DNA of 64,000 bases from Okamejei kenojei. Lineage: Eukaryota. Numbering within the stretch: the first letter of the stretch is position 1; each line of letters starts with the position of its first letter. The stretch covers positions 558,001-622,000 of the forward strand of contig JAVHYY010000112.1 in assembly GCA_035221665.1 (NCBI GenBank), written 5' to 3'. Shown here piece after piece: positions 1 to 62,774 of the stretch. Position numbers and translations under genes: made by a program. The notes beneath the pieces were generated by a model. The model saw only the letters and a list, made by a program, of their open reading frames with translations, was not told where the DNA came from and did no database searches.

Positions 1-261
1 GTTAGCCGGTCCCTGTGAGACGGAGTCTGTGGCAGCGACACCTGCAATAATTTAATAACACATAAACATTTTATTCTCAATTAATACAGGCCAATATTCG
101 TGGAGGAGGATGGACATATTCAACTGAGATAGACCAAAGTCTATCCGGCAGGGAGGTTTTCGATATCAGCGACACCTGATAAGGGAACCCGTATATTTTG
201 CGAACTTACTTGTTTAAAGAGCTGCAGCGAAACAATATAAATGAGCAAGAACTGCGAACAT
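1..261 (-). pseudogene. TCR V segment 1 (alpha/delta-like): leader exon 261-210, V exon starts at 41 and runs off the window
   Basis: 52-nt phase-1 leader MFAVLAHLYCFAAAL*T followed by GTAAGT donor (209-204). Acceptor TTGCAG, then VAATDSVSQGPAN (typical V FR1 start). In-frame TAA in the leader. Confidence 0.75.
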
Positions 262-699
262 GTCGGCCGGCGACCGTTCTGAACAAAGAGGACTGACTCT
301 GAAATTGTTTGCAGTGAAGATACTGTGCGACATCCGGCCTCGCTGCAGATTGCGTCCCTGCTGGCTTTGAATTAAGCATCCAATCAGCTTGCAGCTTCGA
401 TCCACCAAATGGAAAATTAGGCCGTTTGCATTCATCTAATCCGCTCGCAATAATTTGACCATACCTCAAAATATAATTGGTTCCGAGCAATGAAACGACC
501 CGAAAGATAAAATAACTAAATCTCTTGGCCTTTCCATAGGTCTAAATTGTGAGGTGAAGGTAAGTTACATGGTCCCCTCTCAACGTTCAACACTCCAAAA
601 CAACTATTTACTGTTTTCCTTATTAGGTATAAATATAGACAATCCGCAGAATCTCAGCACAATGTCGATATGCGGGTCGACCTCCCACAAGAAGATTAT

Positions 700-1150
700 A
701 GAGGCTTTAGAGAGTGCAGAAGAGGTTTACCAGATTGTGCCTGGATTAGATGGCAATACTGAGAGGAAGAGGTTGGACAAACGTGGATTGTTTTCTCTGG
801 AAAGTTTGTTGTGGGAGACGTGGTAGAGGTATACACAATTATAAAAAAAAAACATATATAGGCAGAAACCTTTACCGAGGGTGCAAATGCCAAAGGCGGG
901 AGGCATAGTTTCAAGATGAGAGGGACAGCGTTTAAAGGACGTGAGCTGGACAAGTGTTTTTGACGATAAGTGGTAGAACGCGCTGCCAGGAGTGGTGGTT
1001 TGCGCAGATGCGATATTTGCAAGTAAGAAACTTTTAGCTGGGCAAGTGGATATGTAGGGCGTGAGGGATATGAATCACGTGCAGGCAGAGACGTTTAGTT
1101 TGACTTGGCATCGTGTTGGGAGCAGACGTTCCGTGCTGAAGCGCCTGTTA
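700..1150 (+). mobile_element. Decayed CR1 LINE 3' fragment
   Basis: LERVQRRFT-like / RLDKRGLFSLE motif typical of the CR1 ORF2 C-terminus; boundaries approximate. Confidence 0.65.
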
Positions 1151-1571
1151 TTGTACTCTTTGGATTTTTGTATTGTATGACATATGTGATATGTTCTCCC
1201 GGAGACTGAAACACAGAAATCATGTATTTGTCCAAATGGTCTTAACATCCTTAATCGGTTATATCATTGAATTCAGGATTTTCACTCAGATACGGTGGAC
1301 CGAGAGGGCTTCCTGTTTAATGCACGAAATGAAGATGCAGCTGCCTGCCGTGAGGACCCGAAAGCCAGTGATGCAGGTTTACGCAGGTAGAGTGGTTCCT
1401 ATCCCTAACGCCTGCGTTATTATTAATGGAAATAATATGAAACCTAATTCGGTAATCGATGGAAATTGAAGGGACGGATAGAACGATTTCTGAAACGACA
1501 GAGGATCAAGAAGCTTTCTTTGCGCATAAAATGAATTGGAACCGAAACCCCAAGATCTGCTGAGCTATTGG

Positions 1572-1610
1572 ACTTTTTGTACGAGAATTTTACTGGTTTT
1601 GAACACCGTG
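1572..1610 (-). other. 23-RSS of V2
   Basis: CACGGTG + 23 nt + ACAAAAAGT. Confidence 0.92.
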
Positions 1611-4118: not shown

Positions 4119-4134
4119 CCACTAGATGGCAGCA
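4119..4134 (+). promoter_or_regulatory. CTCF-like binding motif
   Basis: CCACTAGATGGCAGCA matches the CCASYAGRKGGCRS consensus; lies between divergent V2 and V3. Confidence 0.6.
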
Positions 4135-4172
4135 AAGCGACAGCAACCATCTGAAATGAACTCGGGTTCTTT

Positions 4173-5046: not shown

Positions 5047-6455
5047 ATGGGAGTTCTTGTACTCGTTGTACTGTGGATGAGGTTCATCGTAGGTAAGGCA
5101 GTTATGATTTTCCCCAATATAACTAACGTCCTGGGGGCTGGAGAGCAGACGAATTTCACAGTCACAGAGATTCAGAGGAAAGACACAGATATATAGAAAA
5201 CCCTGGATTGTCTGACCACTGGTCGGATCTGTTGGGGTGAGTAGCTTTCCCGTTGGTTAGGAAAGCCGTAGGCACCAATCACAAAATGAAATTATGATTG
5301 CATGGAGATGAAGACAATGCATTCACCTGTGCGTTATTGGCAGCAAATACAATGGAGCATCAAACTAGTTGGTCCCTGATAAACTGCGCGAATTGTGGAG
5401 TAACTTATTCATTGTCAATGGAAATATAAATATGCCAGTCGGCTGGAAAAGATGCAGCTATCACTTGCGACGAAATTGCCATGAATCGAGAGCCTGAGCT
5501 ACAGGGATAGTTTAGGCAGTCGTCAATTGTATTCCTTGGAGCGCAGAAGGTGAGTGGTAATAGTCGGACGTGTATACATTAGGAGGGGCATTGAGAGTAG
5601 CAGGAGAATGAAGATTCCGAGCGTAGGTTTTAGGTGCGAGCATAAATGGCCACTTCTTCCAAAACGGGCAGTGTGTATATGGACCGAGCTACAAAATGAT
5701 GTAGGTGAAACTGATAGCTGAATCTGGTGTCAGGGGTCATGTGGGGAATTCAGAATAATGGGTTAGGAGGGAGAGATATATCAACCGTGATCGAATGGCG
5801 GAGTACACTTGATGGACCGAATGGCCCAATAGTGTTCCCATCACTTATGACCTGATGCGCTTATGACAATAACAGCATTCAGAATAATTTTGAACTGGCA
5901 ACGACAAGACAACTTTTAGAGGGATTTGAGGCAAACATGGATACAAAGATCATGTTAAGATTGGGCAGCTCGATCGAGTGGTTGTGTCTGTGTTGTTTGA
6001 TTCAATGGATCTCCGCATCAGATCCACTCGTGGAGTAACACATATGCTATCATCTGCACTGTAATGAAGTATGTTAACTTGTATGTCAATATAATTGCGC
6101 GCTTTCCCGCCGATGAGGATTGTATTCAAGTTACGACTAATGTTCTTATTTCGTGTCCCAGATCTCAGCAATGCCGATTCAGTGACACAACGAGAGCCCG
6201 CCGTCAGGCGGATGGAGGGCGATCATGTCACTTTTATTTGCCAGTGAAGCTTATTATTTATACTGGTATCGTCAGTACCCAGGAAGAAGGCCCGAATTCG
6301 TCATGTGGAGAGACACTGACAGCAAGTATGACTTTCAAGCGGATTTCGATAAAGGCCGCTTTGTTGATGTGATGGATAAGACAGCGAGAGAGTATAGACT
6401 GACCATTCCTGGGCCACGGTTGTCCGATACAGCGGTATATTACTGCGCTGGGGCT
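5047..6455 (+). pseudogene. TCR V segment 3 (delta/alpha-like), frameshifted
   Basis: 46-nt leader MGVLVLVVLWMRFIV/G (5047-5092) with GTAAGG donor; acceptor at 6160-6161. V exon DLSNADSVTQREPAVRRMEGDHVTFICQ, then a frameshift near 6245, then SEAYYLYWYRQYPGRRPEF...KGRF...YRLTIPGPRLSDTAVYYCAGA. Confidence 0.92.
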
Positions 6456-6494
6456 CACAATGATGGGTGCGAGCTAAATCCTCGTACAATAATT
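6456..6494 (+). other. 23-RSS of V3
   Basis: CACAATG + 23 nt + ACAATAATT. Confidence 0.88.
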
Positions 6495-7550: not shown

Positions 7551-7554
7551 CTGC

Positions 7555-11929: not shown

Positions 11930-12165
11930 TTTAACATACATTGTGACGGCCAGCAGAGCCCGCAAGAGGTTCAGGGCCCAACACAATGGAGAGAAGCAGA
12001 GGGACCCAGAAATGGAAAAGTTCATAATTTTACTCATGGCAATCTCTGGCAGTTTCCTCCTGTTAAGGTTGACATATGTTGTGAATTTTCTATTTGTGTA
12101 ATTTCCAAGCAATGACTATACCAACGTGTCTAATACCACTGACCCGAAGTTTATACTCCAAAAAA
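11930..12165 (+). pseudogene. GPR139-like GPCR fragment (ICL3-TM6-ECL3)
   Basis: YIVTASRARKRFRAQHNGEKQRDPEME..IILLMAISGSFLLLRLTYVVNFLFV*...DPKFILQ, near-identical to the matching part of the 24788-25761 exon. Confidence 0.88.
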
Positions 12166-12169
12166 GATA

Positions 12170-14411
12170 ATAGACAGAGAATAAAGGATGGTGGGTTTAT
12201 AAAATGTGCATATTTTAATGCTAGGAGCATTGTAAGTAAGGTGGATGACCTTAGAACCTGGATTGACACCTGGAAATATGATGTTGTGGCAATGAGTGAA
12301 ACATAGTTGCAGGAGGGCTGTGATTGGAAACTAAATATTCCAGGATTTCGTTACTTCCGGGGTGATAGAATTGGAGGGATGGAGGTGTTGCATTGCTTGT
12401 CAGAGAGGATATTACAGCAGTGCTTTGGCAGGGTAGATTAGAGGGTTCGTCTAGGGAGGCTATTTGGGTGGAACTGAGAAGTGGGAACGGTGTAGCAACA
12501 CTTTTAGGGGTGTACTATAGACCGCCAAATGGGGAGCGTGATGTGAAGAGCAAATATGTAAGGAGATAGCAGATATTAGTAGTAAGCACAAGGTAGTGAT
12601 TGTGGGAGATTTCAATTTCCCAAAAATAGACTGGGAAACACATTCTGTAAATGGGCTGGATGGTTTGGAGTTTGTAAAATGTGTGCAGGATAGTTTTTGC
12701 AGCAGTACATATTGTCAATGTATCTGACGGAGGTATGCGTTGGTGAGCACTTCGGGACCAGTGATCACAATACCATTAGTTTCAATATAATTATGGAGCG
12801 AGTCAGAACAGGACCTAGAGTGGAGATTTTTGATTGGAGAAAGGCTAACTTTGAGGGAATGCGTGAGGATTTTAAATGAGTGAATTGGGACACTTTGTTT
12901 CATGGGAAGGATGTAGATGAGAAATGGAGGACATTTAAAGGGGGTAAGAGTACAGAATCTTTATGTCCCTGTTAGGTTGAAAGGAAATAGTAAAATTGGA
13001 AAGAGCCATGGTTTTCAAGGGAAATTAGACACTTGTTTCGAAAAAAAAAGAGATATCTACAATAATTATAGGAGGCATGGAGTAAATGAGGTGCTAGAGG
13101 AGTATAAAGAATGTAAAAAAATCTTAAGAAAGAAATTAGGAAGGCTAAAAGAAGATATGAGGTTGCAAGAAAGGTGAAAGTAAATCCAAAGGGTTTCTAC
13201 AGCTTTATTAATAGCAAAAGGATAACGAGGGATAAAATTGGACCATTAGAGAACCAGAATGGACAGCTATCTGCAGAGCCAAAAGAGATGGGGGAGATAT
13301 TGAACAATTTATTTTCTTCGGTATTCACCAAGGAGAAGGATATTGAACTCTGTGAGGTAAAGGGAAAAAAGTAGAGTAGCTATGGAAACTATGAGATTCA
13401 AAGAGGAGGAAGTACTGACACTTTTGAAAAATATAAAGGTGGATAAGTCTCCAGGTCCTGACAGGATATTCCCTAGTACATTGAGGGAAGTTAGTGTAGA
13501 AATAGCAGGAGCTATGACAGAAATATTTCAAATGTCATTAGAAACGGGAATAGTGCCGGAGGATTGGCGTACTGCGCATGTTGTTCCATTGTTTAAAAAG
13601 GGTTCAAAGAATAAACCTAGCAATTATAGACCTATTAGTTTGACGTCAGTGGTGGGCAAATTAATGGAAATTATACTTAGAGACATCTGGATAAACAGGG
13701 TCTGATCAGGAACAGTCAACATGGATTTGTGCCTGGAAGGTCATGTTTGACAAACCTTCTTGAATGTTTTGAAAACTAGGGAAATTGATGAGGGTAAAGC
13801 AGTGGATGTTGTCTATATGGATTTCAGTAAGGCCTTTGACAAGGTTCCCCATGGAAGGTTGGTTCAGAAGGTTCAATCTTTGGGTGTTAATGGCGGAGTA
13901 GCAAGATGGATTCAACAGTGGCTGAATGGGAGATGTCAGAGAGTAATGGTGGATGGCTGTTTGTCAGGTTGGAAGCCGGTGACCAGTGGGGTGCCTCAGG
14001 GATCTGTGTTGGTCCACTTTTGTTTGTCATGTACATCAATGATCTGGATGATGGGGTGGAAAATTGGATAAGTAAGTATGCAGATGATACTAAGATAGGT
14101 GGTATTGTGGATAATGAAGTAGATTCTCAAAGTCTACAGAGAGATTTGGGCCATTTGGAAAAGTGGGCTGAAAGATGGCAGATGGAGTTTAATGCTGATA
14201 AGTGTGAAGTGCTACATCTTGGCAGGACAAATCAAAATAGGACGTACATGGTAAATGGTAGAGAATTGAGGAATGCTGTGGAACAGAGGGATCTAGGAAT
14301 AACTATGCATAGTTCCCTGAAGGTGGAATCGCATGTAGATAGGGTGGTAAAGAAAGCCTTTGGTGTGCTGGCCTTTATAAATCAGAGCATTGAATATAGG
14401 TGTAGGGAAGT
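12170..14411 (+). mobile_element. CR1 LINE ORF2 (3'-truncated), inverted partner of 14805-16463
   Basis: APE and RT motifs (NARS, SDHN, YMDFSKAFDKVPH, YADDTK); high identity to the minus-strand copy. Confidence 0.93.
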
Positions 14412-14666
14412 AAAACGCTGAAACGTTTGTAAATTGTCCACAGTGTGTCAGATGGTATTAGTGTGTGGAGTATTTGATGGTGGGTGTGGGTTCGATGGGC
14501 AGAGCGGGCTACTACCGCAGTTTTTCTCAAAAATAAATTAAAGTACACTGCGTTCGTTTAGTTGCCATCTCATATTCGATGGACTATCGGCGATACATTG
14601 ACAATAGACGCTATTTCCATCATTCTTCGTCATTATTATTGAAACCTGATATAGAATGTTTTCACA

Positions 14667-14800
14667 TCAGATCCGCATTTGGAAGCATCTAGCAACCAGT
14701 TTCAAGGGGTATTTAAACACATCCCACAACTCCTCCCTGAATTTAGTTTGCATCCCAGCAGAAATGCATGAGTTGTACAGGAACTGAGAAGCTCCAGCTT
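14667..14800 (-). pseudogene. GPR139-like GPCR 3' fragment (TM7-helix 8)
   Basis: LELLSSCT / NSCISAGMQTKFREELWDVFKYPLKLVARCFQMRI*. Confidence 0.85.
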
Positions 14801-14804
14801 TAAT

Positions 14805-16463
14805 CATATAACAATTACAGCACGGAGACAGGCCCTCTCGGCCCTTCCATTCCGTGCCGACCATTTGTTTTCCCCTAGTCCCATCTACCTGCACTCAGAC
14901 CATACCCCTCCATTCCCTTCACGTCCATATACCTATCCACTTTACTCTTAAATGTTAAAATCGATCCTGCCTCCACCACTTCTGCTGGAAGCTCATTCCA
15001 CACAGCCACCACCCTCTGAGTAAAGAAGTTCCCCCTCACGTTACCCCGAAACTTCTGTCCCTTAATTCTCATGTCATGCCCTCTTGTTTGAATCTTCCCT
15101 ACCCCAATGGGAAAAAACGTATCCACGTTAACTCTGTCTATCCCTTTCATCATTTTAAAGACCTCAATCAAGCCCCCCTTAACCTTCTCCGCTCCAAAGA
15201 ATAAAGACCTAACTTGTACAACCTTTGTCTGTAACATAGTTGCTGGAACCCTGGCAACATTCTAGTAAATCTCCTCTGTACTCTCTCTATTTTGTTGACA
15301 TCCTTCCTATAACTTGGCGACCAAAATTGTACACCATACTCCAGAATTGGTCTTACGAATGCCTTGTACAATTTTAACATTACTTCCCTACTCCTATATT
15401 CAACAGTCTGATTTATAAAGGCCAGCACAACAAAGGCTTTCTTTACCACCCTATCTACATGCGATTCCATCTTCAGGGAACTATGCACAGTTATTCCTAG
15501 ATCCCTCTTTTCCACAGCATTCCTCAATTCCCTACCATTTACCATGTACGTCCTATTTTGATTTGTCCTGCCAAGATGTAGCACTTCACACTTAACAGCA
15601 TTAAATTCCATCTGCCATATTTCAGCCCACTTTTCCAAACGGCCCAAATCTCTCCGTAGAGTTTGAAAATCTACTTCATTATCCACAGCACCACCTATAT
15701 TAGTATCATCTGCATACTTACTTATCCAATTTTCCACCCCATCATCCAGATCATTGATGTACATGACAAACAACAGTGGACCCAACACAGATCCCGAGGC
15801 ACCCCACTGGTCACCGGCTTCCAACCTGACAAACAGCCATCCACCATTACTCTCTGACATCTCCCTTTCAGCCACTGTTGAATCCATCTTGCTACTCCGC
15901 CATTAACACCCAAAGATTGGAACCTTCTTAACCAACCTTCCATGGGGAACCTTGTCAAAGGCCTTACTGAAATCCATATAGACAACATCCACTGCTTTAC
16001 CCTCATCAATTTCCCTAGTTACCGCTTCAAACAATTCAAGAAGGTTTGTCAAACATGACCTTCCAGGCACAAATCCATGTTGACTGTACCTGATCAGACC
16101 CTGTTTATCCAGATGCTTATATATATTATCTCTAAGTATCCTTTCCATTAATTTGCCCACCACTGACGTCAAACTAATAGGTCTATAATTGCTAGGTTTA
16201 TTCTTTGAACCCTTTTTAAACAATGGAACAACATGCGCAGTACGCCAATCCTCCGGCACTATTCCCGTTTCTAATGACATTTGAAATATTTCTGTCATAG
16301 CTCCTGCTATTTCTACACTAACTTCCCTCAATGTCATAGGGAATATCCTGTTAGGACGTGGAGACTTATCCACTTTTATATTTTTCAAAAGTGTCAGTAC
16401 TTCCTCCTCTTTGAATCTCATAGTTTCCATAGCTACTCTACTTTTTCCCCTTAACTCACAGAG
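14805..16463 (-). mobile_element. CR1 LINE RT and 3' tail (5'-truncated)
   Basis: RT ORFs 15903-16430, 15168-15887 and 14875-15237; tail TGTTATATG abuts the GPCR TM7 fragment. Confidence 0.95.
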
Positions 16464-16464
16464 T

Positions 16465-16509
16465 CACATCTCTGACCGACTCCGCCCTGTATTACTGCAC
16501 TTTCCAAGG
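16465..16509 (+). pseudogene. TCR V segment 4, 3' remnant only
   Basis: TSLTDSALYYCTFQG directly followed by a 23-RSS; the 5' part is replaced by CR1. Not in the ORF track. Confidence 0.85.
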
Positions 16510-16548
16510 CACAGCGATGGAAAGTAGCTTCATATCAGTACGAAAACT
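16510..16548 (+). other. 23-RSS of V4
   Basis: CACAGCG + 23 nt + ACGAAAACT. Confidence 0.85.
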
Positions 16549-16746: not shown

Positions 16747-16948
16747 TGTAGATGTTTTATATGCAACCAATAATATAGTTACCTCAGTCCCATTAACCCC
16801 GCCTAGTTAACATTAATCATAACGCCTTCCCCTTCCTGGGTACAGCTCAGTAGAAGAATGTAGCCAGTGCTTGAAGATGTATGTAATACCCTGTGCTATC
16901 ATTAAAAGATGTTGCACACTTTAAGAGTTTGTGAATTGCTTATTTACA
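16747..16948 (+). repeat. Gypsy 5' LTR
   Basis: TG...CA termini; 5 differences from the 3' LTR by manual comparison. Confidence 0.95.
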
Positions 16949-19900
16949 TGGTGTCGAAGCTGGAAGACACTTGCGTCTCCTGTCTATCGGGTTTTATTTC
17001 TTTTTTTTGATTTGTGCTTTTTGTGCTTAATCTCTCTGGCCATGGCGTCCTCTTGCAGAAAGCCCGCGCAGCTTGTCTTTGATGCTGACATCTCTGAGCG
17101 CTGGGCCACGTTTGAATTTTGTCAACGTCGCACACCACGCTGATCCTGACTCCCTTAAAGCCTCCCTCCTACTCAACCTTGTCGGACCTGATGCCATGAA
17201 GAGAGCCAGAACTTTCACCTACGCTCCAGCGGTCCTGGAAGACAACAACGTGGTGATTACTCCTGCAGAATCTGCCAGCGACCCCGCTTGCCTGCTACGT
17301 AAGTTCAGGGAGATTTGTGACCTGCCTTCGAACCGCATTCTAGAGAGGGCACGGTTTTTTACAAGGAGACAGTTGCCGGATGAACCTGTTGAATGTTTTA
17401 TTGCTGATTTGCGTTATCTCGCCCAGCGGTGCCGCTTTGGTGACATGACAGACCAGCTCACTAGAGACATTTTAGTAACTGGCATGCATGACCAGAAGCT
17501 GCGATGTGAGTTTTTAAGGTATCCGGATCTAACGTTGGAAAAAGCCATGCATGCCTGCAGATTGTCTGAGGTCGTTGTATTGCCAGATGACCATCGGGAC
17601 TCGGGCAATAAATCTGTCCACCTGGCTGGGTTTGGGAGACCACAGCCTCGGACGGGAAACAATGCTTTTCTGCCACGCACCAACCCTGGTCCTGGTGAAG
17701 TGCCCCCCAAAAGGTGCCAAACTGTAACTACATGCACCACAGACTGTCGACGTGCCCCGCCTATGGCAAGGCCTGTAACGTTTGTAAAAAAACTAAATCA
17801 CTTCTCTGCCGCCTGTCGTTTATTCCGTTCCCGTGGGAGACAGGCACAGATGTCCAGACCCAGTCTAAAAATGCTGAGACAATCTGATATCTGTTACCAC
17901 TCACAGCCCAACATAGCTGAATCCTATGATGCAGATCCAATTAATCCTCCCGAGGACTCGATGTGTTTACCCTCCTACAGACACCCGCCCACCGACCTGA
18001 TCCCTCCGTATCTGTGACTGTCATTGATGTAACCTTCCTTGCAAAGTTAGACACAGGTGCGAAGGTCAACGTTTTGTCAATGAATCTTTTCAACTAGATA
18101 AGGAATAATGAGCCCCTGGTTGCTGACAATGCTACCCTGCACGCCTATGGTGGAGAAATTCTAAGGCCTGCGGGGAGGGCCACTTTAACTTGCGTGCTGC
18201 AAAAGGCCACGGGAAACCTGGTTTTCTATGTTTTGAACTCTGACTGTGTAACCCTGCTGGGCAACCGTGCGTGCCAAGATCTTGGCCTGGTGTCCTTCGA
18301 CCGCACGGTCCACAAAGTGCAACTGTCGTTCAACCCGGTTGCAGAATACCAGGACCTGTTCAACAATGACCTGGGGAAGTTACCACTGACATACCATATT
18401 TCCATTGACCCAAATATACAACCCGTGGTCCGCGCACCTCACAGGGTGTCTCACGCCATGAAAGACAGGGTCGAGGCGATGCTTAACAAGATGGTCGAAA
18501 ATGGCGGTGCTAGAAGCGGTTAGCGAGCCCACCGATTGGGTCTCCACCATGGTTGCCACGATAAAGAAAGACAAGAACGAAATACATGTGTGTATCAACC
18601 TGAAGGACTTAAACCTTGCCATCAGGCGACCACACTACCCCATGCGGTCTGTTGAGGACGTGGCGGCTCAGGTCGGGCAAGCCAACCATCTTTTCGGTCC
18701 TAGACGCTAAGAACTCGTTTTGGCAGATCCCGTTGGACAAAGCATCTTCTGACCTCACGACCTTCGCCACACCGTTTGGCAGATTCAAGTTCCTGCGAAT
18801 GCCATTCGGCATCAATTCCGCTAGCGAGGTGTTCCAGCGAACGATGGAGCAGATATTCTCAGACCTGCCATGTGCCATCATCGTGGATGATATCCTGGTT
18901 TATGGGAAGGACATTGCCGTGCACGACCTGACCCTCCGCCGCGTCCTGGAACGGGCGCGGAAGGCGAACGTGAAGCTGAATCTCAAGAAGTGCCGGTTTC
19001 GTGTCTCAGAGGTCACGTATGTTGGACATGTTTTCACCTCTAATGGACTAAAACCCGACCCCTTGAAGGCAGCTGCCATCTCCGAGATGGCAGCCCCCAC
19101 CGACGTGCCAGGTCTACAACGATTCTTGGGCATGGTGAACTACCTTGGAAGTTTGTACCAAACCTCAGTGAGCTGAGTGCTCCCCTGCGGCAGCTGACAA
19201 AAAAGGTTATCGCCTGGGTCTGGCTCCCACATCACCAGCAGGCCTTTGACTGCCTCACGTCAAAACTGATTAGCACTCCGACGTTGCGGTTCTTCGACAT
19301 GGGTCGCCCCATCACCGTCACCTGTGACGCTTCCAAGTTCGGCCTGGGTGCGGCTTGCCTTCAGTCCGTCGACGGAGCGTTACACCCTGTCTCCTATGCC
19401 TCCCGCACCATGACGGACACCGAGTAGCGGTACGCTCAGATCGAGAAGGAGCTGCTCGCGGTGGTGTTCGCCTGCTCCAAGTTCAGAGACTTCCTGTTCG
19501 GCAACAGAGTTACGGTCGAAACCGACCACCAGCCACTGGTGACAATCCTGAATAAGCCGATTCATGCTGCCCCCGCCAGGCTGCAGCGTATGATGCTGCA
19601 GCTCCAGCGTTTCGACTTCGATATAATCTACAAGATGGGCACCGAGATGCACATTGCGGACACCCTATCGCGCGCCCCGCGGACCTCCTGCGCTCGCCAC
19701 GCCTACGAAACAGAGGATTTGCTCGTACTGGGCGTTAACTTTATTCCCACCAAGCAGCTACAGGTTTTGGCCGAGCACACCGCTGCCGATCCAGTTTTGC
19801 AGCAGCTTGCCTCTGTGATTAAAGCAGGGTGGCCAACAAAGCGATCCGCAGCGCCGTCTGAAACACCGCCTTTCTTCCTGGTCCGCGACGAACTGGTGCT

Positions 19901-21239
19901 CCAGGATGGCGTTATCGTCAAGGGATATAAAGTTGTAGTCCCGTCCTCCCTGTTTGACTTTTACATTTGTGCAGCCCATAGCGGACACCCTGGGGTCGAT
20001 GCAACACTCGCCCACGCTCAGTGCCAATTCTACTGGCCAGGAATGGCCAAATATATCCGAGACCGAGTTTCTGCCTGCTCCACGTGCAATAGTCTTGCTC
20101 CACACCAGCAGCGACAGCCCCTGCTGCAACAACCAGCTCCTGCCTTGGCTTGGTCCTCGCTGGCTGCCGACATTTTCAAGTGGCGTGGTGACCACTACCT
20201 TGTCCTGGTCGACTCGTACTCAAACTGGTTCGAAGTGGATTTACTGACATCCCTCACGTCGGAGATGGTGATCCGAAAGCTGCGGAAACACTTCTCCACT
20301 TTTGGGACCCCTGTCAGGCTGCAGACTGACAACGGCAGGCAGTTTACCAGCCGAGAATTCAAAAGTTTTGCCGACAAGTGGAATTTTGTGCATTTCACCA
20401 GCAGCCCAGACTACCCACAGAGCAACGGCCTGGCAGACGGGCCGTCCGCTGCGCCAAGCTTCTGATGGAACAGGCGAGACTATCCAACTCTGATTTGTAT
20501 TTGGACCTCCTGAACCTCATGAATGTTTCCAGGGATCCGGCCATGGGATCACCTGCTCAGCGTCTGATGTCCAGAACTACCAGATCTACCATCCCGATTG
20601 CCAAGCGCCAGCTGAAACCTCGGGTGCTGGAGCCTGCCTCCGTGCAGAGGCGAATTCAGGAGAAACATGACAGCCAGCGGCGTTCCCACGATCGGTCGTG
20701 CAGACCACTCGATCCTCTGTTGCCTGGACAAGTTGTTCGGTTGCAGACCGCCGGTGGTCACTCCCGTCTGGCTACCGTGATTGGGGTGGCCGACTCACCT
20801 TGTTCGTATCTGGTCGACTATGAAGGTACCATCTACCGAAGAAGCCGACAACACCTGCTTGCGGTTAATGAGCCGAAGCCGCAGCACCCGGGGCCCTATG
20901 CCCCGCCACTCTCCTACCAGCAGCCGGCTGCCGTCCGAGCCAGTTTTCCCTGCATGCCTCGATCCCCATCTCGAGCGCCTGGTTCCCCTCTGCGCGGATC
21001 CCCTGTTGCCGGTCGCGGTTTTCCCTCTCCTGTTTCTCCCACCCCACTGCCCTTCCCTGGTTCCCCAGCTGCCTCGCGTCCTCCTGTTTCTTCTGCTCTT
21101 TCGGGGGAAGGGGGAGACATCCGTACGCGCTCGGGCCGGGTCAGCAAGCCTCCTGTTCGTTACGGCGATTTTGTTTAATTCTGCTGTTTAATTCTGTTGT
21201 CGTGACAACAATCTGTTTTTGATTTTCTAAGGGGAAGGA

Positions 21240-21441
21240 TGTAGATGGTTTATATGCAACCAATAATATAGTTACCTCAGTCCCATTAACCCCGCCTAGT
21301 TAACATTAATTATAACGCCTTCCCCTTCCTGGGTACAGCTCAGTAGAAGAATGTAGCCAGAGCTTGAAGATGTATGTAATACCCTATGCTATCATTAAAA
21401 GATGTTGCACACTTTAAGAGTTTGTGAATTGCTTATTTACT
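21240..21441 (+). repeat. Gypsy 3' LTR
   Basis: TG...CT termini, follows the PPT and is followed by TSD GTATC. Confidence 0.95.
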
Positions 21442-24560: not shown

Positions 24561-24626
24561 CGCAGCGGCTCAGGGAGAACCCACATCAACGTTGATACTG
24601 ACAGAAAATAGACATCACTAGCACTC

Positions 24627-24766
24627 GTGTTAACGAAGGAACTGCAGATGCTGGAGAATCGAGGGTACACAAAAGGCTGGAGAAACTCAGCGGGTTAAAC
24701 GTCGCCTATCTCCTTCGCTCCTTAGATGCTGCTGCACCCGCTGAGTTTCTCCAGCCTTTTGTATAC
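24627..24766. mobile_element. Fold-back Penelope-derived mini-element with 14-bp TSD
   Basis: TSD CATCACTAGCACTC at 24613-24626 and 24767-24780; inverted arms (GGCTGGAGAAACTCAGCGGGT / ACCCGCTGAGTTTCTCCAGCC). Confidence 0.8.
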
Positions 24767-24787
24767 CATCACTAGCACTCACCTATT

Positions 24788-32572: not shown

Positions 32573-32639
32573 AGGCCAGTTCATCATCGAGAGCATCGAA
32601 CCCGCCGACCCGGCGGTGTATTATTGCGCGACATATGTA
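32573..32639 (+). pseudogene. V segment 5, 3' remnant
   Basis: GQFIIESIEPADPAVYYCATYV followed by a 23-RSS; 5' part replaced by the Penelope fragment. Confidence 0.85.
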
Positions 32640-32678
32640 CACACTGAAAGAAACCGCGGGGGGCCCCACACAAAAACG
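32640..32678 (+). other. 23-RSS of V5
   Basis: CACACTG + 23 nt + ACAAAAACG. Confidence 0.88.
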
Positions 32679-32720: not shown

Positions 32721-32759
32721 TGTTTTTGTGCAGGGACAGCCAAACTACTTGCCTCCGTG
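32721..32759 (-). other. 23-RSS of V6
   Basis: CACGGAG + 23 nt + ACAAAAACA. Confidence 0.8.
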
Positions 32760-33048
32760 GGACTCAACCCGCCGTCAAACACCACGGAGTCTCCCAGCTG
32801 CGTTCCAGACATTGTTCGCGAGATGGTTAACTTCGAAAGATCAAGCGGCGTCGAAAACCGTGTCCCTGTATGTTTCGCCACCTCGCTATACTTGTGTAGG
32901 AGCAGAGGAAATACTATGGAGTCACCGGAAATCTGTCGGTAACAGAATATATTCGGCTGGGTGCTGATAGTTGTGTAATAGCAGTGGATCTGGATATCGG
33001 CCCCTTCATTTGCACTGATGGCAGACGCGTTCTGTTGCACGTAGTCTC
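32760..33048 (-). pseudogene. TCR V segment 6 (alpha-like), open frame but core Trp and second Cys lost
   Basis: GDYVQQNASAISANEGADIQIHCYYTT..NIFCYRQ...RFSTPLDLSKLTISRTMSGTQLGDSVVFDGGLS; leader not identified. Confidence 0.82.
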
Positions 33049-33099
33049 CTGTACCGTACAAATTAATGAAAGAATGAATGAATATGTTTACTGGCCAAG

Positions 33100-38844: not shown

Positions 38845-38899
38845 CTGGAAGAACAAGAGAGAATGTATTATGGGACGAGCGAAACATATGACCAACTTC

Positions 38900-41072: not shown

Positions 41073-41483
41073 NNNNNNNNNNNNNNNNNNNNNNNNNNNN
41101 NNNNNNNNNNNNNNNNNNNNNNNNNNNNNNNNNNNNNNNNNNNNNNNNNNNNNNNNNNNNNNNNNNNNNNNNNNNNNNNNNNNNNNNNNNNNNNNNNNNN
41201 NNNNNNNNNNNNNNNNNNNNNNNNNNNNNNNNNNNNNNNNNNNNNNNNNNNNNNNNNNNNNNNNNNNNNNNNNNNNNNNNNNNNNNNNNNNNNNNNNNNN
41301 NNNNNNNNNNNNNNNNNNNNNNNNNNNNNNNNNNNNNNNNNNNNNNNNNNNNNNNNNNNNNNNNNNNNNNNNNNNNNNNNNNNNNNNNNNNNNNNNNNNN
41401 NNNNNNNNNNNNNNNNNNNNNNNNNNNNNNNNNNNNNNNNNNNNNNNNNNNNNNNNNNNNNNNNNNNNNNNNNNNNNNNNNNN
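41073..41483. other. Assembly gap
   Basis: Run of N. Confidence 1.
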
Positions 41484-42235: not shown

Positions 42236-42370
42236 NNNNNNNNNNNNNNNNNNNNNNNNNNNNNNNNNNNNNNNNNNNNNNNNNNNNNNNNNNNNNNNNN
42301 NNNNNNNNNNNNNNNNNNNNNNNNNNNNNNNNNNNNNNNNNNNNNNNNNNNNNNNNNNNNNNNNNNNNNN
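42236..42370. other. Assembly gap
   Basis: Run of N. Confidence 1.
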
Positions 42371-52810: not shown

Positions 52811-53499
52811 AATTAACCCAGCAAATTGTGTTTCTTTCATATTCACTAACGGAAGGATGATGCAATCTGATTGATGATGAAGGGAGTCATATCAGGTATA
52901 AGTAGAAAGATTATTTTAGAGGCCGCAGCTTGACTGTTGTGTATTGCGTATGCTCATTTTGTGTATGACGGAAAATGCACGCGCCGGGAAAGGGCCGTCA
53001 TTTGCTGTATACTGCACTGCTCGTGCTGTTTTCGGTGTCCCAGGTAAATTACGCGTCTAAATCCGTGAACAACTAACACTGCTATGCTTGAGTAATTTTC
53101 TGCAATTTATGCTTTTTAATCTTTCTTTTTCAGCCGCCGTATATTATATTGAAGGTAATATCCTCAAATCCTCACATATTTTATCGCTGCGACGTCTGTT
53201 TAAAAACTACGAACATGATCATGTTTCTGATCATTGGAACAGGTATATAAATTCGCACCCTTTTCGAACACAAGCTCTTTTCCTTTCACATCGCGCCCTG
53301 AATCCTGCCTGATATGTGTTCTAATACAGCTGACTATTATTATTAATATTAATGTCAATTAATGGCAGCCCCGCCGACAGTTTGTCTCTCCTTTTCATAT
53401 GTTTTCTTGTTATGTTTACTGTGTTGAAAAAGTTTGTGTTAATGTTCTCTGCTTTGTTTTATGTTAGGGCTGGGCAGGGGGTCACGGGGGAGAATTTTG

Positions 53500-54112
53500 T
53501 TACATCACCTTGCCGGAGATGCGATTCATTTCAGGCTCATATCTCCGGTTGCTCTGCGGCCAAACATCGTGGTGCTGGAGGCGTTGCTCGGGACTGACTT
53601 TGAGCCCCACCTCGAATCATCGACTTGACATCGGAGCCGATCCTTTGCCTTGGATCGACGCTCGAAACGCGGCCTGCGGATTTATCATCCGAAACACTTG
53701 GTCTAGGGTTGAGACCGACATCGGTAGCTCCGAAAGCAACATGACGTTCGACAAACACCGACCAGCGGTCAGATCGCCTGGCGCGGGGAGCTGACATCCC
53801 CCGATGAATGAGCTTTATCGCCCGGATGAGCTGGCCCGCCGCCGGCCACGAGAGGTAAGATCGTCCCGACAACAGAAGGTTAGAGGCTCCCGAGCGCTGG
53901 AGGACAAACAATGAAAAAGAGTGAACATTTTTCACCTTCCAACACAGTGAGAAATGTGGAGGAGTCACCGTGGTGGATGTTTATGTTAAAATGTATTTCG
54001 TGTTTTTGGTTGCTTTGTACTAGTATTACTGTAAGGCAAATCAAATTCCTCATATGTTGCAAAACTTACTTGGCTAATAAAGCATGATTATTATAATTAT
54101 TATAATTATGAT
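53500..54112 (+). repeat. Interspersed repeat with LINE-type 3' end
   Basis: GC-rich body, then AATAAA and an (ATTATA/G)n tail; family not assigned. Confidence 0.45.
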
Positions 54113-55837
54113 ATTCTTGTTTTTGATCATTTCTCTTAAGGCCTCCTGATTCATTCTACGCCTATTCACAAACCAAGAGTGAGCAGCATAAAATAGGAAC
54201 AATTTGTATGATAAAATGACACCAATACAGTCGCTATAACGAACGTTGTGTAAGACGACATTGTTTTAATAGGTTATTATTTTGTATACGTTTCTGCGTC
54301 GTTTTCCCTCTCCGTAGATGCTCTCGGAGCCACATTTACTGTGCATAGTTTGAGACTATTTGCATCTTGGTTTATATTTCATCAATCATACTTCGCGCAA
54401 TTAACAGTCAGTATGAGAATATATAGTTGTAAATGCACGCTTGTCAATACGTGTAAATATAAATACACCGTTTATACGTTACATTTCATGGATGCTGCAA
54501 AAAATATACAAATGCTCATTTCAGGTTGCGCGCGATTTTCATGAGCAGAACGTGTTCTCTTTGATAACGTATATTTTTATTTCGGTTCGTAAACAGATTA
54601 TTATTTGGAATGATAGCATCGCTTTAAATCGTCGTGTATTTTATATGAACGATTGCGTTGGTCCAAGTTACTGGTTAATTGACGAGATCAATCCTGCCTG
54701 GATTCCCACTTTTGCAATGAAATGTTTAACTGAGATGTTAAAATGTTCCCGTTAACTACTTGGAAAATCACTGGGATCACCCCAGAATGCCTCCCTAAAA
54801 CACCAGCAGACAATTGATGAACCTCTCTCTGTTGATTTCCAGTTGCCGGCTCTCACAGACCTTAACACATCCACAGATACCATCCACTTCTCTTTGAGTC
54901 ACTGCATTTAGCAAAGTTGCAAAATGTTTAGATGTAAAACATCAAGTCTGCAATTTATCCCATCAGATAATGCATAAAAATAAGATTTGACACCAAATTC
55001 ACTTTCATATCTTCAGTATTAAAACAATTATTGACATTTAAATACTTGGAAATTAGCATCTTGTTCCCTATTGCTTTTCCATTAACTTAACACAAATGCT
55101 GTGATCGAGGACAGTCAAAAGTTTATAGGTTTCTTAATAAATAAGACACCTGAAATAAATTTCCAGTTGTTATAGAGTGAAACATTCGGAAACAAATATG
55201 AAACATTCTTACTCGGATGACCTGGAATTAAAGCATATAATTAGTTACATAATTGTAGGCAATTACAATATTCAATTACTAGATCCAAACATCTATCCAG
55301 TTCTTAAGAAAAATATAACATTTTTAAATAGCCCGTGTCCAAATAGCATTCGCGCAATAATTCACAATATAACATGATGTTTAAATCTCATTGTCATGAA
55401 TTTATAGGCCAAATGGAAGAATTTAGTGTTTAATTCTGGAAAATTAATGGCCATTGCGAGTGGAATATTGTGGAACGCGATCGTTTGAAACGTTTTTAAT
55501 AAACCACATAGAACGGATGTCGGAGCGATTTCTCTGCAGCAGGTGAACAGCCTGAGAAAGACCGACTCCGACACGCAGGTGAAATCGGCATTTTAATACC
55601 GCCGCCCTCTCAAAGGCGCACACGGTCAGTGGCAGAACTGCAGCGCCGCTGAAGGTAAGTTTTATAACATACCTACTGCATTGATCTTTACTTCAGCCTT
55701 ACTTCTTGACAGGTTGGTGTGATCATACGCTCTAAGTGGCTGAGTGGGTAAGGCATTCGCTTTAATATCCAATACATGGACGTTTACCTTTGTGCTGGCG
55801 CAATTCCCGGTCATTCAAAGCGATTACCTTATTTTCG

Positions 55838-56128
55838 CGGCGGAACGGTGGCCCTCCTGCCTTATAGCGCCAGAGACGCGGGTTCGACCCTGACTGGTGG
55901 TGCAGTCTGTACGGAGTTTATATGTTTTGCCGTGACCGAGTGGGTTTCTTCCGGGAGCTCCGGTTTCCACCCACATTCCAAATATGCACACGTTTCTAGA
56001 TGATGGCTTTGGCAAAAAAATGTTAACTTGCCAATTTGTCTGGTATATTGCTGCTGCTCGATGATCGCTTGTCGGCGCTGATTTGGTGGGACGAAGGTTC
56101 TGGTTCACCGCTGCATTATAAACTAAAC
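55838..56128 (+). mobile_element. tRNA-derived V-SINE (HE1-like)
   Basis: B-box-like GGTTCGACCC, core GTACGGAGTTT..GGGTTTC..CTCCGGTTTCC..CCACA, AAACT tail. Confidence 0.75.
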
Positions 56129-57914
56129 TGTGGCACGTACTTGATGAGACACTGCAACTACGCCAGTGTTATGTTTAACATAATTCGGCACTTGAAAACG
56201 ATCAGATGAATACCCGTTTCGCCTTTGCAATCCAAAGAAGGGTCTCGACTCGGAACATCACCCATTCCATCATTCCAGAGCCGCTGCCTGCTCCGCCGAG
56301 TCATTCCAGAAATTCGTCTTTAAAATGAACGAAATATGCAAAGGCACAATGTTTACATTGAGTAAATCACGCCGCTGCATGAACTCGTCAGCAAACATGT
56401 TTCCATTGGGAAAAGGCCACATAAACAAATACTCTCCCCAGAAAATACTTGCATACTTAAATACAATTTAATAATGTTATTTACTTTAAGTAAATCATTT
56501 GTTTCATTGACTGATATAAAATACTTGAATTAATACTTCAAGAAAATACACATATACTGACCGAAAACTAGGCGGTGGCAAGGCTTGAGAGATACGTTTT
56601 ATCACTACTCACAATCTGTTTCCATCTGTCCTACAGCGAATTTGATGACGATTGTGATACGATCACAGGGAAGATGCGGACTCTCAAAATGTATCAGCCG
56701 CTATCTGTTGTCCATGGCGGTGATGGACTTCCTCGCCATCGTTGCCGCAGTGATATTAAGTCGTCTTCGAGCTATTTATTTCCCCGTTAGCTTACTATCC
56801 ACCACTCCCGGCTGCAGTCTCCTTATCGCGTTCAGTTTGTTTTCCAAAGACACTTCCGCCTGGTGAACGGTGGTGTTGACCTTCGATCGTTTCATCGCCA
56901 TTTGCTACCCACATCTGAAAGACCGATATTGCACGGAGAAAATCGCGACTGTCGTCATCGGAACGGTGTGTGTATTGTACTGTGGAAAAAAAACATACCT
57001 TTCTTTTTTACATATGTGTTGGATAATATACCTTGGTACTGCAACATAAAGGATGAAATATTATACTTTACTCGCATGGAAGATATATGACTGGCTACAT
57101 TGTATGTGTGCCGTTCATGCTAATTTTGCTGGTCAATGTTTTGACGGTCCGGCACATTCTAGCGGTCAGTGGAGCCCGCAAGAGACTGCGAGCTCAGAGC
57201 CATGGAGATAAACAGAATGACCCAGAGATACAGAGCAGGAAAAAGTCCATCATTATACTATTCGCCATTTCGGGCAGATTCCTGCTCTTGCATCTCAGAT
57301 TTACTAATGTTGTGAATTTTGTTATGGTGCAATTTTCTATCAAGGATTATGCGAACAATTCTGATTCCACCAACCCAATGTTTATAGTCCAAGAAAGCGG
57401 TTACATGATGGAACTGCTCAGTTCATGCACCAACACGTGCATCTATGCGGGTACGCAGACTACATTCAGAGAACAGTTGAAGAATCTGGTCAAATATCCC
57501 TAGTAGGTAATTTGCAATCGATTCAAACAAAGGAACGACTGAAATATTTGGTCTCATATTCCTAATAAACAAGTAGGAAGTTAATTGCCAACGGAGTAGT
57601 AGTTGTTTATTTTAATTTTTTTTTTAGATACACAGTCTATGTTCTGAATGATGAGTACTGTGAACTCGCGGCAATCGTTGGTGCGACGCGAAAGGGTTGT
57701 AAACTCGCTAACATTTATAGACAATAGGTGCAGGAGTAGGATATTCCGCCCTGCGAGCCAGCACCGCCATTCAATGTGATCATGGCTGGTCATCGCCAAT
57801 CAGAACCCCGTTCATGCCTTCTCCCCATATACCCTGACTCCGCTATCTAATTAATGATATTTAATAATATTGCACCTCGTTCTCGGTTCACTTTCTGTTC
57901 GACTTCTGGAACAT

Positions 57915-59040: not shown

Positions 59041-59755
59041 TACCTCCTGTGGCAGCTTGTTCCACACACTAACTATCCTTCGTGTGAAAATGTTTCCCTA
59101 CGGTTTCCTATTAAATATGTTTCCCTTCTCCTTGAACCTATGTCCTCTGGTAGTCGATTCTTTCGGCAAAGGACTGTGCATCTATCCGAATCTATTCCTC
59201 TCATGATTTTATATGTCTTGCTCATTTCACCTATAGCTTTACTTTCGATAGGAGTTTTCCGCATAGAGAAGGTAGTTTAAGCACGGTATCTGTTTGGAAC
59301 TTTACACAATCTATATCATCCGCTGCTAAAACAGTAGATTCTCTTTAATCCGAAAACCTCGTCAATGAGCAAAGATACGTTGTTTCAATGATTAAAGGAA
59401 ATCATCAATACAACTCGTTGCACCTATTCAATTGAAAATCTTCGCTCGTTTCGAAAACAATATATTCCAGGCATATGTATACATATTCATGAAATCACAG
59501 AAGTTGAATTATTGAACGGGCCACATGGGAATGCGTAGATGAGGCGAGGCTGTACCAAGCAGCTGGGCGTGAACGACAGGGCGAATGGGCATAACATGTC
59601 TACCCATTAAATGCTGTCTTTTCATTTAAACCCTGAAGCTTAGCTGGTCACTCGTTTGTGTTATATTATTCTAACTATCACTTTACCAATGTAATTAGTT
59701 TTCCAGTGCAATTGATCGGATATGGTAGCACGCGGTACAGCTCCTCCCTGAACTT

Positions 59756-59871
59756 AGCTGGTAGAAGGGTGTCTGTCAGTCTGAAGAAGGGTCTCGACCC
59801 GAAACGTCGCCTATCTCCTTCGCTCCTTAGATGCTGCTGCACCCGCTGAGTTTCTCCAGCTTTTTGTGTAC
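59756..59871 (+). mobile_element. Penelope pseudo-LTR fragment inserted in GPCR helix 8, 13-bp TSD
   Basis: TSD CCTCCCTGAACTT at 59743-59755 and 59872-59884. Confidence 0.85.
59777..59813 (+). ncRNA. Minimal type I hammerhead ribozyme-like motif
   Basis: CTGAAGA-A-GGGT(CTCG)ACCC-GAAA-CG-TC: core boxes, perfect stem II, palindromic ACGT in place of stem III, GUC cleavage triplet; stem I weak. Confidence 0.65.
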
Positions 59872-62067
59872 CCTCCCTGAACTTGCGCTGTGTCACGGTG
59901 TAAATGGCCGTGTTGGTGCAGGAGCTCAGCAGCTGAAGCATCAATCCAGCCCTTTCCAATTCTGCTGCAGGGTTTCTCCATGCCTTGTACACAAAGAGTC
60001 TCAAACTTCGAACCGCAATAAAATGTGCAACACGTGTGGCCTAGAGCAGGATGAAGCAGCTCGAGATTGCCGGTAGTAAAACGACCGACCGTCTGCGGTT
60101 TACCATCTCCATGTCTTTCTTTTTCTCCCTACCCCTGTTGTCCCAGAGACTCCTGCGGATCCGACTGACAACGGAAATTCGCCTGACCGTGAGCGCGTTA
60201 CACAACAAAATCAGGCAGAATGTAATCACCGGAGTGAACAACTGTTCAGTCCAAGAGAACACCACCCATTCGGGTTGAGTGTAAAAATATACGAATTTCA
60301 GGCAGCCCAGTTCTCTACACGTTCCCACGATAAAAAGAGTATGCAAAGGGAAAGGGTATGTTTATGAGTCAGACGAAAGGGATCACTGTCAGGATAGCAA
60401 TCGACGCGGATCTCTCGGTGCAACATTTGGTTTTCTTTTTCTGAGTAGAAATCGCAACAAAGCGATCAAAGGTGAAAGGGAGTGAGAACCATACAGAACA
60501 ATTCACCGTGACGGATGCCAGGAAAATCGTTAAGTTGCACACCGGAGTGCAGGGCAAGGAAGCATTCCACCAATACAGATCAGCAATCCGGTGAAATATC
60601 ACCTCACCGAGAATCTCAGAGAGGTCCGCGGTCGCCATGGCTAGCATGTAACGAGTGATACACTTGGAAAGGCCGCACTTGCCACAACACAGGATCACAA
60701 TCACCATCAGATTCACTGGGAAATAATGAAAACAGAAACGGATTAATTGTGTGGTGCACGCGTTGGTGGGCGGGAGCAGACAGAGTAATGTAAACATGTG
60801 TCGCCAGTAGTAGAGACTATTTGTTTAACGAATCAATATTTGGGACAATCATCCGTCAAACGTTTGGCAGAAAGATGTTCATTCAGTAAATTATTCAAGT
60901 CCTGATTACCAAAATGAGTGGGATTGCCTTATGTATAGACGTATGACATAAAGATGGAAATATCAGTACAAAAGGCAATCTAATTTTGGTATCCTGGAAT
61001 TTAATCTGAAAATGATTGAAATCCTGTTTACCAAAATTAGTGGGATTGCCTTTTGTACTAATCGTCACACCATTATGTGAATCGTTTGATTGTTGATGGA
61101 AAATATAACACATTTTCAAGGTCCTCTTGAAAATGGACAGTGTATCTCAAAAAAGAAATTAATAATCCAAATTACGGTCGATCAAATAAGAATTAAGAGG
61201 GGATCCTCCCAATATCAATTATCTGATTTCATTTTTATAACGCTAAATTCATATTTTATTGCAGCGTTATTTTTTGTTGCTGAGACGTGAGCAAATTTGC
61301 ATCGCGGGCATTGAGTCAATCGAGTTCTGGATTAACGCGGACTGTTTTGCATTGGACTTTCGAGAATGCATTTCCGAACATGAGACCAAGGAAAGCATTT
61401 CAGTGCAACGCTGCAAATATAATTACAAACACCCTTCACAAACACGGTTAACAACATAACGGACACGTATTTCCTGCCGTACAGCGGGCGGCTTCCGTAC
61501 TGTAAGTGAAAAGAACAGGTGCTGGAGTATCTCAGTGGCTCAAGAAATGTCTCTGGAGGGCATAGATAGGCGACGTATCAGCTCGAGGCCCTTTTTCAGA
61601 CTCCGATCGGAAGAATGATCCCAACCCGATACGTCGACTGCGTTGGTCCTCCAGAGATGCTGCAAGACTAGCTTAGATTAACGAGATCTTTGTTGTCACG
61701 GCACGATCGCTGCATTTGTAGTTTATATTATCTGTATTCCTAGTTTGTCGAGCAGGTTGTTCGTACGACCTTCAAATCTGTCTCTGCGAAATTATCCCGA
61801 AGCAAATTTAAGAGTGATACAGAAAATGCATTGCCAAATGACTGGACGGGGTGTGTTTATCGTTCTGCCAAGTGCAGTATCACATTGGAAATTAAACTAC
61901 CACTCACAGCGAGGACGAAATTGCGCTTCACCTCGCAACAGCGCAAGTACGGGCATTGATTTTAGTAAAAAGCCGCCAGGGCTACATTTCTGCCAGCTTC
62001 AATGAGCGGCATCCATTAAAGATACCAACGCGCTTCCTCGCTCCTAAGATGCACATCGCTTATTTTT

Positions 62068-62300
62068 CTTTAGTTTAGGGATACAGCGCGAAAACACGAC
62101 CACCGGCCCACCTAATCCGCACCGCTCACGCACACTAACAGTAGCCTACACACACACGGGACAACTGATTTTACTTTTATGGAGCTTGGGAGGAAACCGA
62201 AGATCTCGGGGAAACCCCAAAAGGATAGGGGGAGAACATATGAAATCCGTACAGACAAGCGCTGTAAGACAATTGCTCAAGCGCTGCGCCAGCGTTCCGC
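62068..62300 (-). mobile_element. Degenerate V-SINE
   Basis: Homologous to 29845-30175. Confidence 0.6.
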
Positions 62301-62774
62301 CCTAACCCCTGCTGGGCTACTCGGTATGTTCTCTTAATCTTTAATATTGTACGCTTTTCAAACAGTCTTTGTTAGTTCCATGCGATGTGCCCACAATTAC
62401 CTAGCAGGTACACCGATTGCTGCCAGAATCGGATAATACACAAGTCCTATTATTTCTTCGATCGGATTATCATGCATTTTAATGCACCGGTCCAGGCGTT
62501 CACTCCTTGTGCAGCCGCTCAGCTGTTGTCAGCGATGCAAACAAATAACTGGCATATTTATAAAGTAAATAAAGGGAGAAACAGGCAACGAGAGTACATC
62601 CCTGTGGACATTACGTACACACTTTGAACAAACATCTACTGTTTTCCATGTAATATTAAAAATAACCTTATTCTGAAGAAAAAGGTCCGAAGAAGGGGTT
62701 CGGACCGAAACGTTGCCTATTTCCTTCGCTCCATAGATGCTGCTGCACCCGCTGAGTTTCTCCAGCCCTTTTGT

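Follow-up and report, generated by a model that had tools for sequence, protein, structure and literature searches.

The subject of this work is a 64,000-nucleotide stretch of the genome of the skate Okamejei kenojei (contig JAVHYY010000112.1, positions 558,001 to 622,000 of the forward strand; hereafter the window), in which antigen-receptor variable (V) segments lie among genes for G-protein coupled receptors (GPCRs) related to GPR139. The window is probably a decayed, transposon-rich piece of the V region at the skate alpha/delta locus for the T-cell receptor (TCR), intermixed with an old GPCR array; the two families would share a residence on the chromosome and would not be coupled by duplication. 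From the types of V segment present we infer the identity of the locus as a TCR alpha/delta V region.

Organization of the window

Five GPR139-like GPCR loci, one intact and four pseudogenes, were located by tblastn using the window's own open reading frame (ORF) and a horn-shark family member as queries. Interspersed with them are five V-type elements, all of them defective. From left to right the elements succeed one another as V V G V G V V G, after which come the assembly gaps and then G G. This amounts to 6 runs for 5 + 5 items and matches the expectation for a random mixture; the two families are therefore truly intermixed, and the window is not a boundary between two blocks. The strands are mixed in both families, with three V elements on the plus and two on the minus strand.

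Much of this had been proposed in a preliminary description of the same DNA. The order it gave for the five GPCRs stands, and its assignment of one intact gene and four pseudogenes was borne out by tblastn, by the frames of the ORFs and by direct reading. The intact gene does lie between V segments that bear recombination signal sequences (RSSs), though every V is defective. The description had also counted six V segments, of which five were found; the sixth was not recovered by motif scans, by Pfam searches of 47 candidate ORFs, by low-stringency blastn and nhmmer searches with the five V elements, or by a V-domain hidden Markov model (HMM). The framework 3-like stretch GRFSISATPDKG at about 133–237 (+) was considered for this place and rejected, having neither an RSS nor an HMM match.

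The assembly is interrupted twice, at 41073–41483, after a long (GA)n run, and at 42236–42370, within transposon-like DNA, and 752 bp of read sequence separate the two gaps. No reading frame, V or GPCR touches a gap, the nearest features ending at 38851 on the left and beginning at 52975 on the right. The alternation is already complete in the gap-free interval 1–41072, which holds three V-to-GPCR and two GPCR-to-V changes. The scaffold matters only for how the two rightmost GPCR pseudogenes are linked to the remainder.

V segments and recombination signals

The V-domain HMM was constructed from 89 such domains and applied, with filtering switched off, to each ORF of at least 20 amino acids in the six frames; it returned exactly five elements, with E-values from 7e-20 to 0.008. 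All five V ends abut a CAC-heptamer, a spacer of exactly 23 bp and an A-rich nonamer. The RSSs ascribed to the V elements in the preliminary description are therefore present at every one of the five, as TCR-type 23-RSSs. The heptamers match the consensus at 5–6 of 7 positions and the nonamers at 6–8 of 9. A scan of the window for RSSs gave 9 sites where 3.35 were expected from shuffled sequence, and five of the nine stand exactly at V ends. The window thus contains both the V-set domains and the RSSs of rearranging V segments. Not one of the five elements combines an open frame, both canonical cysteines and Trp41, as a functional V segment would. By type, two are TCR-alpha-like and one is VH-like, in agreement with a TCR alpha/delta V region.

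The leftmost element, a TRAV-like pseudogene at 1572–2158 (−), consists of a leader exon (2158–2092), an intron and a V exon (1921–1611), and is inactivated by one stop codon only, an in-frame TAA at 1753–1751. Its RSS is composed of the heptamer CACGGTG (1610–1604) and the nonamer ACAAAAAGT (1580–1572), on the minus strand. Pfam V-set was recognized in both halves, the best PDB matches are to TCR alpha chains, and the V HMM gave E-values of 4e-10 and 5e-10.

The second element, at 6162–6494 (+), is a VH-like pseudogene with a frameshift and stop at about 6243–6247, in the first complementarity-determining region. Its 23-RSS, on the plus strand, has the heptamer CACAATG (6456–6462) and the nonamer ACAATAATT (6486–6494). 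It matches Pfam V-set (2.9e-07) and the V HMM (E-value 1.6e-19), and its best PDB matches are to antibody VH domains, with E-values of 1e-12 to 1e-25. No D segment lies behind its 23-RSS, and it is located among TRAV-like V segments. Judged by its sequence, this element would agree with the TAILV / VH-delta V segments found in the TCR delta of elasmobranchs.

Two elements survive only as 3' stubs. That at 16445–16548 (+), which reads ...SLTDSALYYC..., retains a 23-RSS (CACAGCG / ACGAAAACT) and matches the V HMM with an E-value of 0.0015; its 5' part has been replaced by the reverse-transcriptase sequence of a long interspersed nuclear element (LINE; RVT_1 at 15906–16430 (−)). The other, at 32560–32678 (+), reads ...IEPADPAVYYCATYV and is followed by a 23-RSS with CACACTG at 32640–32646 and ACAAAAACG at 32670–32678 (V HMM E-value 0.008). 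Transposon-like sequence has replaced its upstream part. A piece resembling a Penelope GIY-YIG domain was noticed by eye upstream of this second stub, at 32.5 kb, and was set aside, there being no significant Pfam match.

The fifth element, TRAV-like and with a continuous frame, occupies 32721–33049 (−). Its V exon (33049–32760) has no second cysteine (...GDSVVFDGG), and its 23-RSS, also on the minus strand, comprises CACGGAG (32759–32753) and the nonamer ACAAAAACA (32729–32721). The best PDB matches are again to TCR alpha chains (V HMM E-value 7e-20), and a HMMER library search over 1.8 billion representatives gave 73 matches, the top one bearing the name 'T-cell receptor alpha chain V region'. 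The models matched in this search are from other vertebrates and none is from an elasmobranch; word-based protein searches with V queries gave no matches. The elements at 32560–32678 and 32721–33049 stand tail to tail with their 23-RSSs facing each other and the nonamers 42 bp apart. Joining of this pair is forbidden by the 12/23 rule because both spacers are 23 bp.

The intact GPCR gene

The intact GPR139-like gene extends over 24788–29509 (−) and specifies 347 codons in two coding exons, a model that was searched exon by exon. The long ORF here has no ATG before the second transmembrane segment (TM2) and is without the family start MHAPGNGPVFA. The 23 codons absent from it were located by tblastn, with a horn-shark query, 3.7 kb upstream on the same strand. 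Exon 1 (29509–29440, −) encodes MHAPGNGLVFAVYYSALAAFGVP plus 1 nt, and exon 2 (25761–24788, −) includes the stop codon. The splice sites were read directly, the donor being G|GTAACG and the acceptor a pyrimidine tract followed by CAG|CG. With exon 1 found and the splice sites in place, the gene therefore has a phase-1 GT-AG intron of 3.7 kb (29439–25762, −), which is packed with high-copy repeats.

The exon 2 product matches Pfam 7tm_1 with 61.2 bits against a curated cut-off of 30.5 (E-value=1.4e-16; profile positions 2–260 of 260), which makes it a class-A (rhodopsin-like) GPCR. Its closest relative is a Leucoraja erinacea protein named 'probable G-protein coupled receptor 139' (94% identity), as suits a skate near to, yet distinct from, that species. 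The next-ranked matches bear the same name and come from skates, rays, sawfish and sharks (60–78% identity); those from Amblyraja, Pristis, Heterodontus and Mobula show 72–78%, the Heterodontus (horn shark) protein 73%. The skate gene agrees with eight relatives at all columns in which these do not vary, and it has the characters of the chondrichthyan 'probable GPR139' expansion, including the start MHAPGNG...GVP|AN.

In the RefSeq model of the Leucoraja erinacea orthologue (P0001) the exon 2 start ANALTIVILAQ is swapped for 25 residues that include the LINE reverse-transcriptase motif VVYNDFSKAFDK. This model has probably taken in a piece of an intronic transposon through automatic annotation.

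DNA contigs from three related organisms match the window at about 95%. They are genomic DNA, since they cross the border between exon 2 and the intron unspliced. Relative to contigs of related species, exon 2 diverges by 2.6–3.8% and the intron and flank by 7–9%, figures to be read with the reservation that the contigs are possibly paralogous and that pieces below 90% likeness were filtered out. Together with the 73% identity to the horn-shark protein and the retention of the invariant columns, the comparison hints that the intact gene has been maintained under constraint. One related species' contig lacks about 163 bp (24627–24789) just past the stop codon, and 24577–24753 is a very high-copy repeat. 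The segment 24627–24789 is probably a SINE-like (short interspersed nuclear element) insertion in the 3' flank of the gene.

GPCR pseudogenes and the receptor family

The pseudogene nearest the left end of the window is a split fragment, with residues ~203–281 at 11937–12164 (+) and residues ~294–322 at 14774–14688 (−), a CR1-like LINE break and a part inversion accounting for its condition. At 37325–38851 (−) lies a member of a second, deep lineage, which carries several frameshifts and is interrupted by a piece of a LINE at about 38114–38766. Beyond the gaps, the pseudogene at 52975–57530 (+) is of the intact gene's lineage and is made up of exon 1 (52975–53043), an intron of about 3.6 kb and exon 2 (56637–57530); its exon 1 is 69 nt long against an expected 70, and exon 2 contains two in-frame stops and a frameshift. 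The last, at 59846–62477 (−), belongs to the second lineage and has an exon 1 at 62477–62402 (MHDNPIEEIIGLVYYPILAAIGVPA), with 4 extra nt before the donor, and a body at 60719–59846 which contains frameshifts (Pfam 7tm_1 E-value=1.3e-07). The two-exon layout of the intact gene recurs in the pseudogenes at 52975–57530 and 59846–62477, and the intron is therefore a feature of the GPCR family.

A family search with the intact GPCR ORF returned 1416 matches at an E-value of 0.001 or better, and the best 120 of the 1416 are all chondrichthyan. The large expansion of GPR139-like genes in cartilaginous fishes that the preliminary description had pointed to is thus real. A tree built with 88 family members places the intact gene, the pseudogene at 52975–57530 and the fragment at 11937–14774 in one batoid clade, itself nested in a clade that includes shark proteins; the grouping of the intact gene with the Leucoraja, Amblyraja, Pristis, Heterodontus and Mobula proteins is well supported. 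The pseudogenes at 37325–38851 and 59846–62477 form a separate deep lineage in the same tree. On this phylogeny the GPCR copies of the window are two anciently separated lineages, that is, old duplicates and not recent co-amplified cassettes.

Several long public models of the family (P0004, P0119, P0037, P0023 and others) carry two 7tm_1 domains and appear to be tandem neighbours fused by automatic annotation. Such double models indicate tight head-to-tail arrays in Mobula and Heptranchias. None of the long public gene models examined joins a V and a GPCR; they are GPCR-GPCR or V-V fusions. In the literature searched no paper was found on the expansion of the GPR139-like family in cartilaginous fishes or on its position among TCR V segments.

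The only clear relative of known structure for the exon 2 product is human GPR139 (E-value=1e-10, ~30% identity over TM1–TM5), other class-A receptors scoring 2e-4 or worse. The DRY-region motif 'DR(F/Y)IA(I/V)C' is common to both, and the RefSeq name of the family is 'probable GPR139'. Set against this likeness, the similarity of the skate family amounts to 44.6 bits and fades after TM5, and the family runs to many hundreds of copies across sharks, skates and rays. In other vertebrates GPR139 exists as one brain gene that is highly conserved (PMC12208981), and a 2025 review of its evolution makes no mention of sharks or paralogues (PMC12208981). Orthology to mammalian GPR139 was considered and rejected, as the match of 44.6 bits and ~30% identity covers residues 1–198 of 324 only and the paralogues number in the hundreds. 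By sequence comparison, the skate family is a relative of GPR139 and not its orthologue.

No joint duplication unit of V and GPCR genes in the window

The preliminary description supposed that the two families co-duplicate. Self-BLAST of the window disclosed no repeat unit with both a V and a GPCR, the long repeats all being LINE or long terminal repeat (LTR) sequences. The self-matches that are not transposons comprise two of the GPCR bodies, at 71.8% DNA identity, and the GPCR fragment 11957–12166 against exon 2 of the intact gene (75.8%). The sole V-V match at the DNA level, between 1572–2158 and 6162–6494, is weak (nhmmer E-value about 1e-9, with no blastn hit), and the V elements are of differing types, TRAV-like and VH-like. 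With no joint repeat, one weak V-V match and two old GPCR lineages, co-duplication is not supported in the window, a result drawn from 64 kb with five members per family.

Transposons and decay

Self-BLAST delimited a Ty3/gypsy-type LTR retrotransposon at 16747–21440 (+), with 201-bp LTRs that are 98% identical, a gag-like ORF, RVT_1 at 18616–19173, and RNase H and integrase domains at 19461–20465. It sits ~200 bp past the RSS that ends the 16445–16548 V stub and, from its sequence, is a young insertion. The same analysis revealed inverted CR1-like LINE copies at 13347–14413 and 16464–15380 that are 94.8% identical. These copies flank the inversion that parts the two halves of one GPCR exon (11937–12164, + and 14774–14679, −). 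Copies of the same family at 57.9–58.5 kb are 97.6% identical, which suggests that it was recently active. Throughout the window CR1-like LINE copies are 72–98% alike in self-comparison, and elements with a reverse transcriptase adjoin the breaks in genes. Insertions of LINEs, LTR elements and other transposons, together with at least one inversion, have broken up both the V and the GPCR genes.

Comparison with known systems

A mixture of TRAV-like and VH-like V segments has been reported for shark TCR delta (PMC12227049), and the window resembles the elasmobranch TCR alpha/delta locus in having TRAV-like V with 23-RSS beside VH-like V with 23-RSS. It differs in that all the V elements in the window are pseudogenes. 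GPCR genes in the locus go unmentioned in the text of a 2025 paper that deals with the TCR alpha/delta-IgH complex of elasmobranchs (PMC12227049).

The parallel with olfactory receptor (OR) genes at the mammalian TRA locus, also drawn in the preliminary description, has a firm basis in the literature. OR genes are interspersed among the 5' TRAV genes in human, mouse and sheep (PMC4574546): human OR10G2 and OR4E2 lie between TRAV1-1, TRAV1-2 and TRAV2, and Olfr1507-1509 of the mouse and sheep counterparts are comparably placed (PMC4574546). In both cases class-A GPCRs of a large, clustered birth-and-death family stand between TCR alpha V segments and can be lost when a distal V is used. In mammals the receptor genes number two or three and are confined to the locus's 5' edge, whereas the skate window has five copies in 64 kb. 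The receptors differ as well, the skate family being GPR139-related, matching Pfam 7tm_1 and not 7tm_4, and having a short first coding exon with an intron inside TM1. Membership of the OR family was rejected for the skate GPCR, which has no 7tm_4 match at an E-value of 0.01 or better and matches an OR structure only at 0.003, among generic class-A matches.

Trypsinogen genes lie within TRB and other non-antigen-receptor genes within immunoglobulin loci, and lymphocytes lose them as a by-product. The resemblance here is that an unrelated tandem family is embedded between the V segments and the D-J-C part. The differences are that trypsinogens are not GPCRs and that they form one or two blocks which do not alternate with V segments.

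Origin of the arrangement and alternative explanations

The old tandem array intermixed with the V region would belong to a class-A GPCR family specific to cartilaginous fishes, and the two families would undergo independent birth and death side by side. Their neighbourhood would then be one of common chromosomal location, as for OR genes among TRAV or trypsinogens in TRB. Deletional V(D)J joining discards whatever DNA lies between the J and the V that is used. Were a functional V farther from J-C to be used, the intervening GPCR genes would be removed from that allele in that T cell, while an oppositely oriented V would invert the GPCR stretch instead of deleting it. Somatic loss of GPCR genes in T cells is accordingly to be expected if functional V segments are distal to them. 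Most likely such loss is an inconsequential by-product, since the receptors probably do their work outside lymphocytes. GPR139 is an amino-acid-sensing receptor that responds to L-Trp and L-Phe. A chemosensory or neural role for the skate family is a guess, prompted by how large the family is, by its pattern of birth and death and by its relationship to GPR139.

Some observations weigh against placing the window in a TCR alpha/delta V region with a maintained receptor gene. No J or C element lies within the 64 kb; a motif scan gave no J-like motif, FGXG-type motifs occurring only inside a LINE. Among the sequencing runs on record, none recorded as RNA contains the intact GPCR. The possible paralogy of the contigs behind the divergence figures, and the five copies per family to which the co-duplication result applies, belong with these points.

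The missing J and C would be accounted for if the V elements were an orphon cluster, relics outside the working TCR alpha/delta locus that are scattered in a GPCR array and never recombine. That every V is defective, two being mere stubs, and that their orientations are mixed would agree with this. Real TRA V arrays, however, run for hundreds of kilobases without J or C and include many pseudogenes, and the element at 1572–2158 is one stop codon away from an open frame; an orphon cluster is therefore unlikely. The mixing of the families could also be spurious, V-bearing and GPCR-bearing sequence having been misjoined through shared repeats. LINE copies of 94–98% identity are abundant, there are two gaps, and the short contigs of related species cannot confirm long-range order. 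Such a misassembly is nonetheless barely credible, given the five switches within gap-free sequence and the several junctions that are transposon insertions inside a V or a GPCR with the matching halves nearby, as in a real insertion history.

The true intermixing of the families also lends itself to the proposal that V and GPCR genes duplicate as units and that V(D)J recombination gives each T-cell clone its own GPCR content or expression, with a function in the T cell. Recognisable RSSs make RAG-mediated deletion or inversion across the GPCR genes mechanistically possible. The proposal is improbable in view of what the window contains: no V-plus-GPCR repeat unit, V segments of different types with one weak DNA match between two of them, GPCR copies that are old and of two lineages, four dead GPCRs out of five, and not one V element that is still functional. 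The OR genes in TRA and the trypsinogens in TRB have, moreover, no known T-cell function. Very improbable is a wider version, in which dozens of GPR139-like genes alternate with V segments across the locus and some are transcribed in thymocytes or T cells with a clone-specific content set by V-J deletion, or in which the two families share a chromatin system for the stochastic choice of one gene. A decayed TCR alpha/delta V region in which an old GPCR array happens to reside thus remains the probable explanation.

Significance

Taken alone, the window represents modest biology, a decayed example in which one conserved receptor gene is surrounded by transposons and dead V segments. Arrangements of this kind are already known from mammals; its scale and the GPCR family involved appear to be new. 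Were a GPCR expressed in T cells, or a system of gene choice shared by the two families, antigen-receptor recombination and GPCR repertoires would be linked in a new way. If the interleaving spans the whole locus and is found in other elasmobranchs, no known antigen-receptor locus would be as heavily 'shared' as the TCR alpha/delta V region of cartilaginous fishes, which would house a lineage-specific GPCR family of hundreds of genes. The pairing of OR and TRAV genes in mammals would then extend to the base of the jawed vertebrates, as a pattern that recurs with another GPCR family, and would point to an undescribed and very large receptor family in animals known for few classical olfactory receptors.

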